Below are positions 8,549 to 20,160 of a DNA stretch of 64,000 nt, in pieces (within the stretch, counting starts at the first letter, position 1; every line of letters starts with the position of its first letter). The stretch lies in the sequence record KJ019143.1. One strand, given 5' to 3'. Made by a program: the position numbers and the translations under genes. Under the pieces are notes generated by a model. It was not told the DNA's origin and did no database searches. It saw nothing but the letters and a program-made list of their open reading frames with translations.

Positions 8549-8996
8549 TCTAGAGCTAGAGTATCATCTTTATCTGGATGGAAACCCTATTCAGACACTG
8601 AAGGATGACGCTAGTACAATGACTTTAGCCAAGAAGAGAGTTATCGGTCCTTACATTCGTAGAGCTGAATCTTTTATTAAAATATCAGAACCATTTAGAG
8701 AACTACTTCGTCTTGATGATGGTAAGGATAAACTTCTAGATGCAATAGGTGTTGTCTGGGCACACTACTTTGAACATAAGATTAACAAGAAGTATATGGT
8801 TATCCCTAAGGATGCATCTCTTGATTTTATGGAATACTTTGGTACTATGGCACAGAAGGATAAGTTCCCGGATGATAAATATATTAAGAAAGCTCAGCGT
8901 ATCATTCTCTCTCACGAAAAGAGTATTGATGCTTTCATTAAGGCTTTTCATAGTATCCGTTTAGCAAACGACAAATATCTCTCCCTGAAGAAATGA
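8541..8996 (+). CDS. hypothetical protein
   Basis: 151-aa ORF overlapping both neighbours. Confidence 0.7.
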   Translation: MDDLELEYHLYLDGNPIQTLKDDASTMTLAKKRVIGPYIRRAESFIKISEPFRELLRLDDGKDKLLDAIGVVWAHYFEHKINKKYMVIPKDASLDFMEYFGTMAQKDKFPDDKYIKKAQRIILSHEKSIDAFIKAFHSIRLANDKYLSLKK

Positions 8997-11671
8997 TCAC
9001 ACCGAAGTCCCTACTATCATTCCTATCTGAAGCCGCTGATTCTGAGGCTGCACAACAGGCTAAGGAGATGGGTTTAACCTCTGCCGGTTATGGTAACTGG
9101 AGAGACAGGTCGGGCAATGTTGTTGCCAAAACTGTAGATGGTCAGTTGGTGATGATTGACGCCAAGGCAGACCCTATGGCTAGACCGGCGGCACCTGAGG
9201 AGGAAATGCCACCTGAAGAGGAGGAGGATCCCCAGTTTGTAGAACCAGATCCAGATATGGTTGAGAAAGTAGCTAAGGGTCTTTCTGGTGGTAGATATAA
9301 TATTGCATCAGCACAGAGGAAGAAAGAGTTACTGGCTTCTGCTAGACAGATACTAATCAATAAACAGATCCAAGACGCTCAGATGCAGGCTGACGCTGAT
9401 GCTCAGGCAGCGACACAAAACCCACCAGAACCCACTCCAGAAGAGTTAGCACAACAACAGGCAGATATGGAGTTACAGCAAAAGAATGCTGTGATGGATA
9501 CTGAACTGAAGGCACAGAGTGTTGAGAATGGGAAACTGGACCTTCAGATGAAGAAGGACCAGATGAAGCAACAGAAGGAGGCAGAGAAAGAAGCCAAGGC
9601 TATGGATAAACTAGCCAAGAAAGCAGAGGCACAGAAACAAGCAGAAGCAGAAGCCGCAGCTCCTCCACCAATGCCACAGGGTGTCGCCCCCGATGCACCA
9701 CCACTTCCTGAAGAAGAGATGGTTGTACCTGATGAACTGGATGCCCTGCTTGGAGCTATTAGGGGTGGTAATGAGAAGAAGACTAGTTCTGTTCTAGGTA
9801 AAATTCAGAAGAAAATTGGTAAGAAATCTGCTCCAAAGGCAAAAGCAAAACCCAAAAAGACACCTAAAGTTCAGACAGATCGAAGAATACCTGTTGCGGC
9901 TGTCGATAGAACAGATGTCCCGCAGTTTCAATCTGAAGCCCTAAGTCAGATGAATGCATATCTATCCGAAAATAGACAGAGAGAGGAGGATGATTACTAT
10001 AGGGGTGCAGCAATTGAGGCTGTGCGTGAGCAACACGGTGAGGCTTTCTATTACTTTGATGAACCAAATGGTGTTGTAACAGAAATCAACACCCCACAGG
10101 GTGCTGCTGACCTAATGGAGTGGTCAACTAATAGCTCTAACAAACTAATTGGTAAGTCCCTGAAACCTTTTTGGAAAGAAGTTGATAACTTCCATAACAA
10201 CTGGGCAGATCCTGAACTCCGTGACGAGAATAACTACGAACAAATCATCGAAGTTACTCGCCCAAACCGAGGAAAGATACCTGATTCTGTAGTAGATTCT
10301 GAATGGAAGAAACTAAAGAATGCAGAGAGGAAGCAACTAGCTGAAATGGGTCTAGGTGGTGCTGGTGGTCGTGCTAATATGTTTCTAAAGACCGATAAGG
10401 ATAGGGAGAAGAGGGGTAAATCTATCCTTAAGGTGTATCTAGAACAGGGCGGTCGAGATGCCTGGTTGGGTTCTTCTGACACTAACCCTATTAGTTGGAA
10501 GGATATGACTGTCGATCATGTTCATTCTGAGGGTGATGTTCAGTTCTGGCAAGCCGAATGTGTCAAGAGGGGTATGGATCCTAAGGATTATCAGGCTTTG
10601 GCTAATGATCCAGAAGTTAACTATGTTATGACTCGTTTTGGATTCAATGGAGCTCAGAAGAGGGACAACTCCATGGATAAATTATACACTGAAATGGAGA
10701 AGAAGTATTACTCTAAAGGTAAGAATGAAGTTGATAGTTTTACTAGAGGTAATGCTGAGAAGAAGATGAGGAAGCAACTTAGGGAACAAGAATATTATGC
10801 TCCCCTAGTTCAGAATCTTAAGGCGGCAGTTCAGTCTGGCAATTTTACCCCAGAAGTTTATAATGAACTATTTGATACTTATAAGAAAGGTAGGTCTGAA
10901 CTTGAGACATCTAACGGTCCTAGAACTGATCGTTCTCAGATGATTATGGGACGTAATGAATCTACCGATCCTTGGAGATCTCTTGCTGAAAGATCACTAT
11001 TTGGTTATAAGATCTTTGCTGGTGATGGTCTCCGTGCCAAGAAAGGTGGTCAGATTGCTGGTTGGTCTGGTGTCGGTGGAACTACCAGTGGTTCTAATGC
11101 GGCTGATGGTGAAGCTCCTTCATACCCCTTCGAGGATACTGCTATGGACTTCTACTTCGATCCTATTCGGAGAATGGCACTATCCAGTCCAGAGAATCAA
11201 AAAAAGGCAGATTCTATCCACAAATACACTCAGTTTATGGGTAACGCCTTTGTTACTGGTAAGATTGGATCTCAAGAATGGCACAACTATCTAACCCAGT
11301 CTTCACAGATGATGCATGAGATGCTTCCTGATGAGTGGAAAGGTGAGTATGAGGCGGAACGGGGACAGGAATACCTATCAACAATTAATAGAACTCTAAA
11401 CAAACTCAATAAGGGTCAGGATGATCTTGAGGGTGATAATTATGCGCCCGATCGTAATATCACTGAACTTTTTAAGAACTCACCACAGAAGAGTTTAGCT
11501 GATCAGGGTATTGAAATTATGAGATCTATGATGGATCCAGAGAACTTCAATGCGGTTGACTACTATGATCGTGGTAATCTTTATGAAGGTTTCGAAAATC
11601 TTGGGTTGTTATCTGGTAGAGGTGATGTTATAATGGAGAGGTTCCAAAATAAGAGAAGGAATGAAATTTGA
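8993..11671 (+). CDS. large putative virion-packaged protein with HNH-like motif
   Basis: 892 aa; N-terminal FLSEA tag shared with the 14214 protein; Q/E/A/P-rich linker; QGGRDAW...TVDHV...N...N. Confidence 0.75.
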   Translation: MITPKSLLSFLSEAADSEAAQQAKEMGLTSAGYGNWRDRSGNVVAKTVDGQLVMIDAKADPMARPAAPEEEMPPEEEEDPQFVEPDPDMVEKVAKGLSGGRYNIASAQRKKELLASARQILINKQIQDAQMQADADAQAATQNPPEPTPEELAQQQADMELQQKNAVMDTELKAQSVENGKLDLQMKKDQMKQQKEAEKEAKAMDKLAKKAEAQKQAEAEAAAPPPMPQGVAPDAPPLPEEEMVVPDELDALLGAIRGGNEKKTSSVLGKIQKKIGKKSAPKAKAKPKKTPKVQTDRRIPVAAVDRTDVPQFQSEALSQMNAYLSENRQREEDDYYRGAAIEAVREQHGEAFYYFDEPNGVVTEINTPQGAADLMEWSTNSSNKLIGKSLKPFWKEVDNFHNNWADPELRDENNYEQIIEVTRPNRGKIPDSVVDSEWKKLKNAERKQLAEMGLGGAGGRANMFLKTDKDREKRGKSILKVYLEQGGRDAWLGSSDTNPISWKDMTVDHVHSEGDVQFWQAECVKRGMDPKDYQALANDPEVNYVMTRFGFNGAQKRDNSMDKLYTEMEKKYYSKGKNEVDSFTRGNAEKKMRKQLREQEYYAPLVQNLKAAVQSGNFTPEVYNELFDTYKKGRSELETSNGPRTDRSQMIMGRNESTDPWRSLAERSLFGYKIFAGDGLRAKKGGQIAGWSGVGGTTSGSNAADGEAPSYPFEDTAMDFYFDPIRRMALSSPENQKKADSIHKYTQFMGNAFVTGKIGSQEWHNYLTQSSQMMHEMLPDEWKGEYEAERGQEYLSTINRTLNKLNKGQDDLEGDNYAPDRNITELFKNSPQKSLADQGIEIMRSMMDPENFNAVDYYDRGNLYEGFENLGLLSGRGDVIMERFQNKRRNEI

Positions 11672-12566
11672 TGTTGTTATTGGCAACCCCCCATATCAGA
11701 ATCCTGATGGTGTAAAGAACAAGAAGATCTGGTTATCTTTCTTTGATCTTGGTGTCTCCCTCCTAAAGAAGGGTGGCACTATGTGTTACATCACGCCCAC
11801 CACTCACTTCTGGAGTTTGGGTAGAAAGTGGCAAACTGGTGTGTCTGCTGATATTCTACTGAAACAGAACAACCTTCTTAGTGTAGATTTCACTACATCC
11901 AAACACTTCCCACAGGTTGGTGACTATATTTGTAACTATGTTCTACGCAAAGAACCTCCCAGTGGTATGGTAGAGGTTATTGAGAAAGATGGGACAGAAG
12001 TTCTACGCCCACACAATGATGTCTATGATTGTGATGAGGAGAGACAAAAGGCAAAGTTCTTCTCTGCTATGAGAGAACTACGAGAGAAGTATGGGAAGTA
12101 TCATATTCCCCACGACACAAGAGATAAGAGTCATTATAGTCAGACACAGGAGGGCGTGTATCAGCATCCTACTTATATTTCGGCAGCAAAACAGATATGG
12201 TATGCTGACAGTCCTACACTAGGGACTGATACACTGAAGATTATTATGAATATGTCTTCCTACTTCTGGAATATCAATGATACTCAGAAGTATATGAGGA
12301 TTGATTCAGGTCCTGGTGTTGGGTTATTGGGAAGAATGTTGGCAATTGATAGTGTGAAGGATGGTGAGAAGATAGTTGAGTACCTAACTTCACCACTAGT
12401 GAAGTTCTACATTGACTGTATGAAGAGGACATCCCCATGGAACCACGCGATGTATCAGTTACCAAAGTGTCACCATATGACAGAGAGTGAGATCCTAGAT
12501 GAGATGGGTTGGACTAGAGACCAGTTTGAAGAAATGTATCCAGAACGTCTGGAAACCAAAGTATAG
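11661..12566 (+). CDS. partial Eco57I/TaqI-like N6-adenine methyltransferase (motif IV plus TRD-like part)
   Basis: Begins FDVVIGNPPYQ...LLKKGGTMCYITP; in-frame stop at 11631 rules out an N-terminal extension. Confidence 0.75.
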   Translation: MKFDVVIGNPPYQNPDGVKNKKIWLSFFDLGVSLLKKGGTMCYITPTTHFWSLGRKWQTGVSADILLKQNNLLSVDFTTSKHFPQVGDYICNYVLRKEPPSGMVEVIEKDGTEVLRPHNDVYDCDEERQKAKFFSAMRELREKYGKYHIPHDTRDKSHYSQTQEGVYQHPTYISAAKQIWYADSPTLGTDTLKIIMNMSSYFWNINDTQKYMRIDSGPGVGLLGRMLAIDSVKDGEKIVEYLTSPLVKFYIDCMKRTSPWNHAMYQLPKCHHMTESEILDEMGWTRDQFEEMYPERLETKV

Positions 12567-12595
12567 TTGACAAGGGACCCCAGGTGTGTTATACT
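12567..12595 (+). promoter_or_regulatory. sigma70-type early promoter
   Basis: TTGACA, 17 bp, TATACT, with TGTG extension. Confidence 0.85.
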
Positions 12596-12620
12596 ATCTG
12601 GGTAGGTTAGGTTATTCTGT

Positions 12621-13502
12621 ATGGTGAAACCCCTGTTTAAGTGGACTGGTGGAAAGGGGCGACTATTCCAGAAGTATCAAGATCTAAACTTCTTCCCAGA
12701 GGCAGACAGGTTCGACACATTTGTTGACCTGTTTTTTGGTGCTGGGTCAGTCACCCTTTGGGTTGCGGAGAAGTATCCAGATAAGAAACTCATTATTAAT
12801 GATAAGAACACGGAACTTATGGGGTTATATACCCAAATACGTGATAACTGGGGTGAGTTTAGTGAGCACTATAAGAGAGTGTATAACGTATTCCTAGACA
12901 CCCCAATAGAGAAAAGAAAGGCACTCTATAACTGTTATAAGAAGAGATATGCATGGAACTATAAGTGGTTGTCAGAAGCAGAGATTGCGGCAAACCTCTT
13001 GGTTATGATGAAGATTAACTTCAATGGTATTTGGTTAGCGTATAAGATGTATGGTCGTAGGTATTCTACGGCACCAGGGAAGATTGATTATAAAGAAAGT
13101 ATCTTTGGTATGGAGAATGTGGAACAGTTCCGTCAAGTCCTACTACGGGCAACACTCTACAATAGATCCTTTGAGGATGTTCCTATTCCTGATAACTCCT
13201 GGGTATTTGCTGATCCACCATACAGAGACACCAGAGATATGTATTCCGATACATTCACCGATGAACTTCAGTCTAAACTGGCAAAGTTCATAGTTTCTAC
13301 AGACGGACTATACTGTGAGTCTAATAAAGAAACTGGTGATGGTTTCTGGGGAGAACACTTCCCTATGGAGAACATCCACTTCACAGATCACAAATACACT
13401 TGTGGTTATGGGGGATCCATTAACCCAGTCACTGAAGTTCTTATAAAGAACTATGGGAATAATATCCCACAACCAACTACCCTTGATTCCTTTTTTAACT
13501 GA
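12621..13502 (+). CDS. DNA adenine methyltransferase (Dam/D12 class)
   Basis: FKWTGGK, DLFFGAGS, INDKN, FADPPY. Confidence 0.9.
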   Translation: MVKPLFKWTGGKGRLFQKYQDLNFFPEADRFDTFVDLFFGAGSVTLWVAEKYPDKKLIINDKNTELMGLYTQIRDNWGEFSEHYKRVYNVFLDTPIEKRKALYNCYKKRYAWNYKWLSEAEIAANLLVMMKINFNGIWLAYKMYGRRYSTAPGKIDYKESIFGMENVEQFRQVLLRATLYNRSFEDVPIPDNSWVFADPPYRDTRDMYSDTFTDELQSKLAKFIVSTDGLYCESNKETGDGFWGEHFPMENIHFTDHKYTCGYGGSINPVTEVLIKNYGNNIPQPTTLDSFFN

Positions 13503-13504
13503 TT

Positions 13505-14197
13505 ATGCAAAAGAAAAACCGTATCTCCCACGAAGAAGAAATTAAACTATGTCGTCAGGCACAACTACAAGATCATACATCCAAGTATGCTATGACTAAA
13601 ATGGTTAGTGCTAATATTGGGTTGGTTGAGAAACTCGCTAACAAACTCTACATCAAGAATGATCAATACTCTTTCGATGATCTATACCAGGAGGGTGTAT
13701 TTGGTCTTATCAGAGGTGTGAATAAGTTTGATCCTAGTGTTGGTTGTAGGTTCTCCACATATTCATACTACTGGATCTATAGTTATATCATGAGGTATTG
13801 TGAGAATAACCTAGGTAAGATCCGTATTCCCACTCACCTCCGTGAGAAGATGAGGAAACAGAAAGATAATAAGGTAGAGTTGGACAGACTAAAGTCCAAA
13901 GTCCCGTCAGTAGTATCATTAAATACAATAGTGGGTGAATCACTATCCTTGGATAATGTAGTTACATACACCGAGAATATCTCATTTGATGATGAGATGG
14001 AACATGTTTTGGTTGTTATGGATGAGGTTTTGGATGAAAGAGAACATCAGGTTCTCTGTAGTAGGTTTGGTATTGGTGGTGAGAAACCTCTATCACAAAG
14101 AGAGTGTGCCAAACTACACAATGTTACCCATGGTGCTATCTACTTGATTGAGAAGAAATCAATCAGGAAAATCAAACACCATATGGGTTATAAATAA
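13505..14197 (+). CDS. sigma70-family RNA polymerase sigma factor (short)
   Basis: Region 2 DLYQEGVFGLIRGVNKFDP...RFSTYSYYWI; region 4 HTH LDEREHQVL..RFG...SQRECAK. Confidence 0.9.
   Translation: MQKKNRISHEEEIKLCRQAQLQDHTSKYAMTKMVSANIGLVEKLANKLYIKNDQYSFDDLYQEGVFGLIRGVNKFDPSVGCRFSTYSYYWIYSYIMRYCENNLGKIRIPTHLREKMRKQKDNKVELDRLKSKVPSVVSLNTIVGESLSLDNVVTYTENISFDDEMEHVLVVMDEVLDEREHQVLCSRFGIGGEKPLSQRECAKLHNVTHGAIYLIEKKSIRKIKHHMGYK
14189..14196 (+). promoter_or_regulatory. T4-type late promoter
   Basis: TATAAATA. Confidence 0.8.
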
Positions 14198-14213
14198 TAC
14201 TATAGTAGATTCT

Positions 14214-15428
14214 ATGGCGATGAGATCGTTTCTAACATTCCTAACCGAAGCCCGTTCTCGTGCATCTAAAAGAGCCAAAGAGTTGGGACTCACTGGCAAT
14301 GGTCACGGTGGATGGGAAGATAACGAAGGTAACCTAGTCGCCATGACGGTGAAGGGTGATCTGGAGTTTGTGAAGGGAAGAGAACCCAAAGAGGAAGAAG
14401 AACCCGATGAAAAGACTTCTGCCCCTGAAGAGGAACCAACATCCAACAAAGCGCCTGGGGTAGATCCAGAGAACACAGATACTCCAAGACAGAAAGAACC
14501 AGCGCCTGTTCCCAAAGATAAGGGTATTCTAACTGTTGCTTTCGGTAGGTTTAACCCTCCTACGATTGGACATGAGAAACTAATCAATACTGTAGCATCA
14601 TATTCAGAGAACGGTGATTACATAATCATTCCCTCTAGGAGTGAGGATAAGAAGAAGAACCCTTTAGATATCGACACTAAAGTTAGTATCATGAGGCAGA
14701 TGTATCCAACACACGCCGAGAAGATTGTTAACGATCCACATAATAGAACCATCTTTGATGTTATGCGTAAGGCGCATAATGATGGTTACGCTGGTATTAG
14801 GATTGTTGGTGGTGGAGATAGAGTTAAGGAATATGAGAAGTTAGCCAACGCATATAACGGATCTACCTATCAGTTTGATGAAATTGATGTAGTAAACGCT
14901 GGCGACAGGGATCCAGATGCGGAAGGTGCGGAAGGTATGTCTGCCTCCAAGATGAGAAAGGCGGCAGCTGATAACGACTTTGCTTCTTTCAGAAAGGGAA
15001 TGCCAAAGACCCTCAGTAACGACCAGATGGTTTCCATCTACACTCAGGTTCAGAAGTCTATGGGTGTAACACCTAAGGAAGCTGTCATTGAAAACTGGAA
15101 AGTTGCTCCTAGACTGTATCCACAGGAACTGAGAGAGGCTTATATCCAAAACGAAATCTATAATATTGGTGATACTGTCAGTCATGACACCACTGGTATG
15201 GTAGGTAAGATCGTAAGAAAGGGAACCAATCACCTCATTTGTGTAACAGAAAGTGAGGAAATGTTCAAGACCTGGACACAGGATGTTAGTCCCGCAGATC
15301 TAAAACCACAACCAGCAATCTCTACTCCAAAGGAGAGGGAAGTTGGAACAGATTCCCTTAGATCTTTCCTTCAGAGGATCACTCCAGGAGAGAAAGAGCA
15401 ATCCTTTATAAATAAACATAAGAAATAA
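14214..15428 (+). CDS. cytidyltransferase-like (HIGH-family) nucleotidyltransferase with N-terminal tag
   Basis: AFGRFNPPTIGHEKL, KKNPL, MSASKMR; start placed at ATG 14214 (or 14220) downstream of the late promoter. Confidence 0.88.
   Translation: MAMRSFLTFLTEARSRASKRAKELGLTGNGHGGWEDNEGNLVAMTVKGDLEFVKGREPKEEEEPDEKTSAPEEEPTSNKAPGVDPENTDTPRQKEPAPVPKDKGILTVAFGRFNPPTIGHEKLINTVASYSENGDYIIIPSRSEDKKKNPLDIDTKVSIMRQMYPTHAEKIVNDPHNRTIFDVMRKAHNDGYAGIRIVGGGDRVKEYEKLANAYNGSTYQFDEIDVVNAGDRDPDAEGAEGMSASKMRKAAADNDFASFRKGMPKTLSNDQMVSIYTQVQKSMGVTPKEAVIENWKVAPRLYPQELREAYIQNEIYNIGDTVSHDTTGMVGKIVRKGTNHLICVTESEEMFKTWTQDVSPADLKPQPAISTPKEREVGTDSLRSFLQRITPGEKEQSFINKHKK
15407..15414 (+). promoter_or_regulatory. T4-type late promoter
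   Basis: TATAAATA. Confidence 0.8.
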
Positions 15429-15447: not shown

Positions 15448-16944
15448 ATGGATTTCAACGTAACCGAAGCTGTCGAGCTAATCGTATTGTTAGCCGAGAC
15501 AGAACAGCTAACACTACAAGATGCTCTACAGGAGTTCCTATCAGAGACCGAATTGGACTCTGAAACGGCATCCCATCTAAAGGGTGCCCTCTTTGAGAAA
15601 TATTCACTCAGAGAGATGGCTACTGACGCCGTAACAAACGCTATGATGAAAGTGTTTGTTAGTCGTCCAGTAGTAGAGGAGGAAGTGGAAACTCCTGATG
15701 GTAATCTCTATTTTGTAGAGGTTGAACTAGAGGAGGAAGTTCTAGAAGGTTATCTAACCCTAGAAGAAATCCAGAATATGAGAGTGGATGCTGATGTTCT
15801 ATCCGTCAAGTTAGTTGATGAGGGTGTTCGTGACACTGACGCCGAGAAAGGAACAGAGGAAAGAAAGAAACGCCTTGAGAAGAAGCGTGGAATGAAGTTG
15901 GACGACCATCCTCAGTATCTGGAAACAGATATGAAGAAGCGTCAGGAGAATAACGAGAAGGCTCGTAAGGATATGGATAAAGTGAAGGGTCAGAAGAACC
16001 CCCACTTCGAAGAGTATGATATTTCTGAAGGTCGCAAAGAAGGTGAGTCTTCTAAAGATTACGCCGATAGAATGACTAAGAAGTATTCTGGTGGTAAGTC
16101 TAAGTCCTATGATCCCATGAAGGATAAGAACTTCGACCATGACAAGGCAGAAAGAACCCGTGGTTCTATGGAAGAAGGTCTAGATGCCGTAGGTGGCGAA
16201 GACGCTGACATTAATAACGATAATAAGGTTGATAAGACTGATAAGTATCTACACAATCGTCGTAAGGCTATCGGCAAGGCGATGAAGAAAGAGTCAGCTT
16301 GGGCTGAGTATCTAAATCGTAGAGGAATCTCTGAGGAAGTATTCTCTGAAGGTGACCTAATCGACGCAGGTCGTAAGAATGAGGGAGAAAGAAGGGGAAA
16401 AAAGATTACCGGGGAGGGTGTTGATAACTCCTCCTCTGTGAAGTTGATGCCCCGTATCGCTGAAGCCGCTATCATCACTGAGAAGTCAGAGAGTAAGTCA
16501 CAACAGCGTCTCTTTGGTATGGTAAGAGCAGCTCAGAAGGGTGAGAAACCCGCCTCTGGTAAGGTTGCTGAACTAGCTTCTAAGGTTGGTAAGAAAGACG
16601 TTCTAGACTTCGCTAAGACAAAACACAAGGGTTTGAAAGAGAACTGTTGTGATAAGTGTGGCACTCCTGATTGTACTTGTGATGAGAAGCCCAAGGCTAA
16701 GAAAAAGAAAGCTAAACTAGATGAAGCAGGGATGCCTATTCTAGAGTATTCTAGAAACAACGCTGAAGGTCCTACACCTGAAATGATTGATCCTCCAAAG
16801 GATGAAGAAGGTAAGAAGGGTGTAAAGAACCCTAAAGGTAAGGCTAAGAGACCTGGTGCAGGTGACAGAAGACCTAACGACGGTGGTTCCGAACTACCAT
16901 TCGATATGGGAACCGTACCTGGTGGCGGCGGTTGTGGTTGCTAA
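15448..16944 (+). CDS. charged modular hypothetical late protein (probable head/internal protein)
   Basis: 498 aa E/K-rich; DADINNDNKVDKTDKYL EF-hand/dockerin-like motif; many LxE motifs; late promoter. Confidence 0.75.
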   Translation: MDFNVTEAVELIVLLAETEQLTLQDALQEFLSETELDSETASHLKGALFEKYSLREMATDAVTNAMMKVFVSRPVVEEEVETPDGNLYFVEVELEEEVLEGYLTLEEIQNMRVDADVLSVKLVDEGVRDTDAEKGTEERKKRLEKKRGMKLDDHPQYLETDMKKRQENNEKARKDMDKVKGQKNPHFEEYDISEGRKEGESSKDYADRMTKKYSGGKSKSYDPMKDKNFDHDKAERTRGSMEEGLDAVGGEDADINNDNKVDKTDKYLHNRRKAIGKAMKKESAWAEYLNRRGISEEVFSEGDLIDAGRKNEGERRGKKITGEGVDNSSSVKLMPRIAEAAIITEKSESKSQQRLFGMVRAAQKGEKPASGKVAELASKVGKKDVLDFAKTKHKGLKENCCDKCGTPDCTCDEKPKAKKKKAKLDEAGMPILEYSRNNAEGPTPEMIDPPKDEEGKKGVKNPKGKAKRPGAGDRRPNDGGSELPFDMGTVPGGGGCGC

Positions 16945-19179: not shown

Positions 19180-20160
19180 ATGGATTTTGTTGATTCCAAG
19201 TTCATAAGTCTAGTATCCTCTCGCTTAGAGAAGTTCAAACAGAAGAAGTCTGACCTGTATAACTGCAGGTGTCCCATTTGTGGAGACTCTTCTAGGAACC
19301 GAACTAAAGCGAGGGGATATATTTATGCAGTGAAACAAAATACAAACTACAAATGCCACAACTGTGGTGTGAGTATGTCATTCTCTAACTTCCTGAAGGA
19401 GATAGATCCAGTATTACATAAGCAATATGTCTTTGAGAAGTTCAAGGGAAAGAACTCTACGCCCATCAAGAACGTTAAGTCAGTTCTGGATAAGTTTTCC
19501 TACGAACCCAAGTTCAAGAAGAAGACAAAGATTGATTTGCCCTCCGCCTTTGATGTAAAACTATCTAAGGAGTATCTGGATAACAGAAAGATTACCTCTG
19601 GGGAGTTTTATTACACAGATAACTTCAAAGAGTTTGTGAATGTAATCAAACCAAGAACGTTTGATGACGAACGTGGGGGACCTAGAATTGTAATTCCCCT
19701 GTATGACAGGGATGGTGTATTGTTTGGGTTACAGGGAAGATCTCTCCTCCCCAGTAAGGTTAAATACATCACAATCATCCTTGATGAAGACCAACCAAAA
19801 GTGTATGGTTTGGAGAAGATAGACCCCACACAGAGGGTTTATCTAGTGGAAGGTCCTTTCGATTCCACATTCATAAATAACTCACTCGCTATGTGTGGTG
19901 CTGATGTAGTATTAGATACACTGGGACTACAGGAACTAGTATATGTGTACGATAACGAACCTCGTAATAGAGAAATCTGCAATAGGATTAATAAAGTTAT
20001 CGATCAGGGTAAGAAAGTTGTTATTTTCCCCACAAATATAGAACAAAAGGACATCAATGATATGATCTTAGCAGGGCATGATATAATGACTGTATTGGGA
20101 TCCAATGTCTACCAAGGACTAACTGCTAAAATTAAGTATAACGAATGGAAAAGATTATGA
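19180..20160 (+). CDS. 61: T4 gp61-like DNA primase
   Basis: Zn finger CPICGD...CHNC; TOPRIM VEGPFDS and YDNEPRN. Confidence 0.95.
   Translation: MDFVDSKFISLVSSRLEKFKQKKSDLYNCRCPICGDSSRNRTKARGYIYAVKQNTNYKCHNCGVSMSFSNFLKEIDPVLHKQYVFEKFKGKNSTPIKNVKSVLDKFSYEPKFKKKTKIDLPSAFDVKLSKEYLDNRKITSGEFYYTDNFKEFVNVIKPRTFDDERGGPRIVIPLYDRDGVLFGLQGRSLLPSKVKYITIILDEDQPKVYGLEKIDPTQRVYLVEGPFDSTFINNSLAMCGADVVLDTLGLQELVYVYDNEPRNREICNRINKVIDQGKKVVIFPTNIEQKDINDMILAGHDIMTVLGSNVYQGLTAKIKYNEWKRL

Follow-up and report, generated by a model that had tools for sequence, protein, structure and literature searches.

A two-part N-terminal module on cyanophage enzymes with a leader resembling the T4 capsid-targeting sequence

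Two otherwise unrelated proteins encoded in a 64,000-nucleotide stretch of the genome of Synechococcus phage ACG-2014f, an 892-amino acid (aa) protein and a cytidylyltransferase-like protein, share an N-terminus that we interpret with good confidence as a two-part delivery module, the leader of which would be the cyanophage counterpart of T4's capsid-targeting sequence, so that the enzymes behind it would be loaded into the phage head, cleaved and ejected. The stretch, here called the window, spans bases 124001-188000 of isolate Syn7803C12 (KJ019143.1), to which positions 8993-15428 are 100% identical; ACG-2014f is a T4-like cyanomyovirus of the family Kyanoviridae, genus Atlauavirus. A modular head-loading tag cut by the prohead protease had been proposed by a first-pass annotation made from the sequence alone, and this proposal is now supported by the match to the T4 targeting sequence, the match to the cleavage site of the capsid protein and the presence of homologues in three virion proteomes. 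New here is the observation that among isolates of ACG-2014f the N-terminal module is kept while the C-terminal payload is exchanged as a cassette.

A shared N-terminus of two parts

Residues 5-103 of the 892-aa protein align with residues 4-114 of the transferase at 38% identity (BLASTP, E 1e-14), and the remaining segments of this comparison yielded only noise with E above 5, which bears out the claim of a tag shared by two unrelated proteins. Within the tag core, 26 of about 52 aligned columns are identical. The acidic, Pro-rich linker that was said to follow the tag before the proteins diverge is present in both (Table 1). The 892-aa protein is the sole content of phrog_3561; its GenBank name, 'cytitidyltransferase', apparently derives from the shared tag alone. 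Both open reading frames (ORFs), annotated from 8993 and 14214, are real, but the true start of the transferase is probably the second ATG at 14220, because an exact ten-residue leader then results, as in its relatives. In the 892-aa protein this leader pattern recurs behind a three-residue extension, which results from the overlap (ATGA) of its gene with the one upstream.

Judged from the alignments, the tag, given initially as one unit of about 55 aa, is made up of a leader of 10-13 aa and a mini-domain of about 40 aa. The likeness to a T4-style targeting peptide therefore holds for the first 10-13 residues and not for the following ~40, which form a separate domain with the pattern A-K-x-L-G-L ... 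G-x-G-x-W-x-D ... V-A-K-T ... G-x-L. An AlphaFold model from a 57-row alignment places a short helix in the leader (residues 4-10), followed by a helix (14-22) and three strands (31-50), with a predicted local distance difference test (pLDDT) score of 80-89 in the mini-domain and of 75 for the whole tag. No Pfam family matched the mini-domain at E up to 10, and a Foldseek comparison of the tag model with the PDB returned nothing better than E 5. Among metagenomic relatives, the mini-domain also occurs alone, in internal positions, or in two or three copies. One bacterial match to it (P0123) overlaps Flg_new repeats and was set aside as a probable cross-match. After cleavage of the leader the mini-domain would, as its position implies, stay on the mature protein.

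A third copy of the tag was found neither in a scan of the related ACG-2014f isolate US26 (86% complete) nor in a motif scan for true N-terminal leaders of the complete ACG-2014f genome, which we had reassembled from the GenBank record and the window for genome-wide searching. A candidate leader at 19375 was dropped, as the motif is internal to the primase ORF that opens at 19180. The RefSeq start of the primase (gp61) at 19375 is probably too far downstream; the ORF at 19180-20160 adds a zinc-finger N-terminus that is present in the S-CREM2 primase.

Table 1 Positions of the tagged genes, their parts and the associated promoter box in the window
Feature	Position	Strand	Basis or remark
Gene, 892-aa tagged protein (phrog_3561)	8993..11671	+	ORF
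13-residue leader (end L-L-S-F-L-S-E) of the 892-aa protein, predicted cut E13 / Ala	8993..9031	+	Sequence
Mini-domain (~40 aa), 892-aa protein	9032..9157	+	Alignment; predicted helix and three strands
Acidic Pro-rich linker and Q/K/E/A-rich helical stretch, 892-aa protein	9158..9662	+	End of isolate-conserved N-terminal module
Variable payload, 892-aa protein	9663..11668	+	Replaced in other ACG-2014f isolates
D-H...N...N motif (residues about 508-556), 892-aa protein	10514..10660	+	Motif
T4-type late promoter box TATAAATA (probable)	14189..14196	+	17 bases before first transferase ATG
Gene, tagged cytidylyltransferase-like protein (phrog_395)	14214..15428	+	ORF; likely true start 14220
Leader of the transferase, M-R-S-F-L-T-F-L-T-E (10 residues), predicted cut E / Ala	14220..14249	+	Sequence
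Mini-domain copy, transferase	14250..14375	+	Alignment
Acidic Pro-rich linker, transferase	14376..14537	+	Sequence
Nucleotidyltransferase core PF01467 with H-x-G-H type motif (T-I-G-H)	14538..14831	+	Pfam

The leader, its cleavage site and virion proteins

The propeptides of T4 internal proteins are 10-19 residues long, and for packaging the first 10 residues of IPIII are enough, with residues 4 and 7 being important for targeting and residues 8 and 10 for processing (PMC9026906). With 10 (or 12) and 13 residues, the two leaders in the window lie within this range, and that of the transferase fits the T4-type pattern exactly. As read from the T4 genome, ipII and ipIII start with M-K-T-Y-Q-E-F-I-A-E-A and ipI with M-K-T-F-K-E-F. 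For the cyanophage side of the comparison, a word-index protein search with the tag alone returned only near-identical relatives and a related-locus search only 2 loci, so a profile built from both window tags was searched against 1.84 billion metagenomic cluster representatives, of which 646 matched at E 1e-3 or better and 163 at E 1e-10 or better. In 101 of the top 150 matches, the tag starts at residue 1 and Glu occupies precisely position 10; these 101 served for a leader logo: Met at position 1 in 100, Lys at 2 in 97, Ser at 3 in 62, Phe at 4 in 87, Phe at 7 in 97, Leu (52), Ile (26) or Phe (17) at 8, Thr (46) or Ser (28) at 9, Glu at 10 in all 101 and Ala at 11 in 82. The resulting consensus, M-K-S-F-x-x-F-[L/I]-[T/S]-E↓A (the arrow marks the predicted cut), agrees with T4 IPII and IPIII by identity at positions 1, 2, 7, 8 (I/L), 10 and 11, and by conservative exchange at 3 and 4; Y4, F7, I8 and E10, the key positions in T4, correspond to F4, F7, L/I/F8 (95 of 101) and E10. 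Two further leader classes among the metagenomic relatives, M-[K/R]-L-[K/R]-x-[I/L]-L-x-E and a longer one with R-W-x-N-W ahead of an F-x-x-F-[L/M]-x-E core, both keep the L/I/M-x-E end.

The prohead protease gp21 of T4 cleaves after L/I-x-E, as first demonstrated at a Glu-Ala bond (PMC9026906), and removes 65 N-terminal residues of the capsid protein gp23 (PMC9958956); the site at residues 61-66 reads F-L-T-E-A, with the cut at E65↓A66. Aligned with this site are A-F-L-S-E-A (49-55) in the capsid protein of ACG-2014f and L-L-T-E-A in that of S-CREM2, with L63, E65 and A66 invariant across the three sequences. In the ACG-2014f capsid protein, A-F-L-S-E-A is the only [LIFM]xE[AGSTV] site in the first 199 residues (the next follows at 200) and is located just ahead of residue 77, the start of the Pfam Gp23 domain. 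The two window tags end in F-L-T-E↓A and F-L-S-E↓A, the same motif as the sites of T4 gp23 and of the ACG-2014f capsid protein, and the tag tetrapeptide is therefore what the protease is expected to cut in the main substrate of this phage. The earlier assignment of FLxE-A to the gp21 consensus is upheld by this agreement. According to Pfam, ACG-2014f encodes, outside the window, a gp21-type protease (Peptidase_S77, 6.8e-33), a gp22 scaffold (T4_CASP, 5.6e-77) and the Gp23 capsid protein (2.6e-153).

Indirect experimental support comes from the virion proteomes of related cyanophages. The S-CREM2 virion contains the non-structural proteins gp6 (SAM hydrolase), gp14 (APH-like kinase) and gp154 (cytidylyltransferase), as well as gp12, a 'Cas9-like' protein of 869 aa, and the small gp13 (PMC10665884). 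All five start with a leader; the sequences are M-K-D-F-D-S-F-L-E-E, V-K-R-F-D-A-F-L-T-E, M-K-N-F-S-S-F-L-T-E, M-K-D-L-H-S-F-L-T-E and an extended one ending in F-A-S-F-M-A-E. When the annotated genes of S-CREM2 were tested for [FLY]xxF[LIM]xE within the first 30 residues, five of the six leader-bearing genes encoded virion proteins, compared with 52 of 221 coding sequences overall (hypergeometric p 0.003), and all four with Glu exactly at residue 10 did so (p 0.003). In two other phages, the NMNAT-like ORF91 of S-SCSM1, which has the full tag, was detected in virions (PMC9602691), as was S-SZBM1_140, which begins M-R-F-R-Q-F-I-I-E followed by Ala. S-CREM2 gp154 and S-SZBM1_140 were virion-detected without the mini-domain, which is therefore not required for packaging. 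A further S-CREM2 virion protein, gp136 (OR473000 107301-108014), starts with the leader-like M-Q-T-F-S-M-F-F-S-E, with Phe at position 8. The proteome papers on S-CREM2, S-SCSM1 and S-SZBM1 do not mention a targeting sequence, and in the literature searched no paper links the capsid-targeting sequence to cyanophages; the only one containing both terms, a T4 review, mentions cyanophages incidentally. No homologue of the transferase was found in the non-T4-like phage S-CBWM1.

Payloads, cassette exchange and late promoters

The identities first assigned to the two payloads were a nucleotidyltransferase and an HNH-like protein. The former stands: PF01467 (CTP_transf_like) was matched at residues 109-206 with E 2.2e-6 and 28.3 bits against a gathering cut-off of 21, while matches to the NCBIfam models for NMNAT and PPAT stayed far under their cut-offs, so by these profiles the enzyme is a member of the HIGH-motif nucleotidyltransferase superfamily that is not assignable to NMNAT or PPAT. 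The latter is not confirmed. The 892-aa protein had no sequence match in Pfam, NCBIfam or the PDB, its gp12-type relatives had none in Pfam or, in a profile search with the gp12-type alignment, in the PDB, and a Foldseek search with its AF2 model, which is poor (pLDDT 57), returned nothing. What points to an HNH-like nuclease, as a lead, is the D-H...N...N motif, which is common to the body of the 892-aa protein and the S-CREM2 gp12 family (hhalign probability 71%); Atlas gave weak hints to HNH families for this body (score 0.77-0.81).

The module is widespread and carries varied payloads. By tblastn, the tag is present in 338 phage records, nearly all of them from cyanomyoviruses, mostly on cytidylyltransferases and in some cases on 'serine/threonine kinases' or hypothetical proteins. 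In the profile search with its 646 clusters, the payloads of the 56 long metagenomic representatives include NUDIX (5), CTP_transf_like (4), protein kinase/APH/RIO/ABC1 and Zeta_toxin/AAA_33; most payloads in these 56 lack a Pfam family.

Isolates of ACG-2014f show 81-96% conservation over the first ~180-270 residues of the 892-aa protein, and the remainder falls into unrelated classes: 19 records have the window-type body, 5 a body that is 27% identical to it (40-42% identity across the whole protein, tag included) and about 21 a body without BLAST similarity. Compared as DNA, the window matches isolate US26 with 97.6% identity as far as 9662 (residue ~223), after which no alignment is obtained before 12621; for isolate US44 the corresponding break extends from 9637 to 11661. 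The US26-type body is homologous to the virion-detected S-CREM2 gp12 (27%, about 1e-58), and a metagenomic protein (P0163) has a body 71% identical to that in the window behind an S-CREM2-type leader. On these comparisons, leader modules track the phage lineage and payloads move across lineages.

The replaceable segment differs in extent between the two isolates. Positions 9663-12620 comprise the payload of the 892-aa protein and a 301-aa methylase-like gene, and US26 has one different payload there; US44 replaces only 9638-11660, with a divergent payload and two extra methylase genes, and keeps the 301-aa gene. This gene (11661-12566), which overlaps the 892-aa gene by 11 bases, encodes an Eco57I-like methylase that begins at the N-P-P-Y motif. 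The part that normally precedes this motif is missing, and alignment with phrog_3689 sets in only at position 66 of the latter, so that a truncated or split gene may be present.

Exact TATAAATA boxes occur eight times in the window (14189, 15407, 17357, 43194, 52406, 53171, 54390 and 56537), all on the + (coding) strand, and for at least five of the eight an ORF start follows 17-61 bases downstream. These boxes, some of which lie within the replication-gene region, are probably T4-type late promoters, and the placement of the first fits gp55-type late expression of the transferase gene.

The second box precedes by 33 bases an ORF at 15448-16944 for a 498-aa, charged, Lys/Glu-rich protein that ends in G-G-G-G-C-G-C and has two protease-type sites near its N-terminus, L-L-A-E↓T (14-17) and F-L-S-E↓T (30-33). 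These features make it a candidate for a head-internal protein, although a comparison with the virion protein S-SZBM1_139 detected no homology. Another ORF, at 87485-90295 of the ACG-2014f genome between the terminase genes, encodes a very basic protein of 936 aa with several [LIM]-x-E-[GA] sites.

Proposed mechanism, alternatives and comparison with known systems

We propose that the tagged proteins are synthesised late and that the short helical leader would be bound by the gp22 scaffolding core, so that the protein would become part of the prohead. Cleavage after the leader Glu by the gp21-type protease would follow, and the mature protein, starting at Ala and keeping the ~40-aa mini-domain and the flexible acidic linker, would remain with the DNA in the head. 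By analogy to T4 IPI and Alt, it would be ejected into the host and act there before phage gene expression. The payload is exchangeable: in this isolate it is a nucleotidyltransferase in one case and a large protein showing an HNH-like motif in the other, and the module is found with other large bodies, kinases, NUDIX hydrolases or a zeta-toxin-like kinase in sister isolates and in further phages. A wider version of this scheme, which we advance tentatively and hold to be somewhat less probable than its opposite, regards leader, new mini-domain and linker as one exchangeable module, a docking platform for recombined effectors that would provide strain-specific sets of injected enzymes as a phage-head analogue of polymorphic toxins, with the mini-domain being needed for ejection or for the first action in the host.

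Several points weigh against delivery into the host by way of the head. The motif is short, so that convergence might in principle explain its likeness to T4. All of the experimental support comes from homologues in other phages. S-CREM2 gp71 has the motif (residues 19-25) and is not in the virion proteome. No exact late promoter precedes the 892-aa gene, just a GATAAATA box 112 bases upstream, and this gene may be co-transcribed with the preceding genes. Two further points, the purity of the virion preparations and the distinction between virion association and ejection, each feed an alternative explanation.

In the first of these, gp21 does cut the leader and the proteins are taken into the head, but their work is done in the capsid or prohead, for instance on packaged DNA or as assembly factors, and they are not host effectors. 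It is virion association that is documented, never ejection into the host, and the HNH-like protein, encoded beside DNA methyltransferase genes, could act on phage DNA. We nevertheless regard a role inside the head as unlikely, since in T4 the proteins with such a leader (IPI, Alt) reach the host by ejection and are active there, and since kinases, NUDIX and NMNAT-like enzymes need small-molecule substrates, which a packed head is unlikely to offer. Slightly less probable still is that the shared N-terminus is an ordinary intracellular domain for oligomerisation, localisation or partner binding and that the virion detections of homologues reflect carry-over of late proteins. The internal or repeated mini-domains would suit such a binding module, and the authors of the proteomes themselves raise contamination, admitting that abundant late proteins could contaminate CsCl preparations. 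An intracellular domain leaves unexplained, however, why the leader is fixed at residues 1-10 with Glu at 10 in 101 representatives, why it matches both the T4 targeting sequence and the cleavage site of the capsid protein, and why leader-only proteins without the mini-domain are found in virions. That the similarity is a functionless leftover of a recent duplication, or chance, has next to no probability, as the presence of just two copies in the ACG-2014f genome is set against an E of 1e-14 between otherwise unrelated proteins and against a tag kept in hundreds of phage records and metagenomic clusters with different payloads, by which it is already contradicted.

If the leader acts as a signal for head loading, it bears on several questions. 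The NMNAT-like transferases, kinases, SAM hydrolase and 'Cas9-like' protein that puzzled the authors of the cyanophage virion papers, who were unable to exclude contamination, would be accounted for by a leader that agrees with the targeting and cleavage signal of T4. T4-like cyanophages are among the most abundant viruses in the ocean, and the leader offers a simple sequence rule for predicting, from genomes and metagenomes alone, the proteins that enter Synechococcus and Prochlorococcus with marine T4-like phages. The exchange of payloads behind a conserved module within one phage species would yield a fast-evolving, strain-specific first strike, with consequences for host range and for defence and counter-defence in the ocean.

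The closest parallel is found in the internal proteins IPI, IPII and IPIII of T4, which have a propeptide of about ten N-terminal residues with M-K at 1-2, an aromatic residue at 4, Phe at 7, Ile or Leu at 8, Glu at 10 and then Ala, rely on a gp21-type protease and a gp22 scaffold, and likewise present diverse, fast-evolving payloads behind a conserved leader. The T4 internal proteins are small and mostly non-enzymatic, whereas the cyanophage payloads are predicted enzymes of 400-1200 aa, most of which have, beyond the cut site, the mini-domain and then a long acidic linker. Another parallel is the T4 ADP-ribosyltransferase Alt, likewise a large enzyme of a T4-type head; gp21 trims it, and it is injected so as to act ahead of phage gene expression (PMC9026906, PMC9958956). 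Alt belongs to another enzyme family and is also trimmed at its C-terminus. Many inner-body and ejection proteins of phiKZ, 201phi2-1 and SPN3US have propeptides that are removed after Glu by a gp21-related protease (PMC9026906), but cleavage there follows S/A-x-E, a 10-aa leader common to these proteins has not been reported, and the phages belong to an unrelated lineage. The polymorphic toxins (Rhs, CDI), finally, share with the cyanophage proteins a conserved N-terminal part for delivery, C-terminal payloads that can be swapped and a recombination breakpoint right behind the delivery part; they are delivered by a secretion system instead of a phage head, and the comparison is an analogy only.

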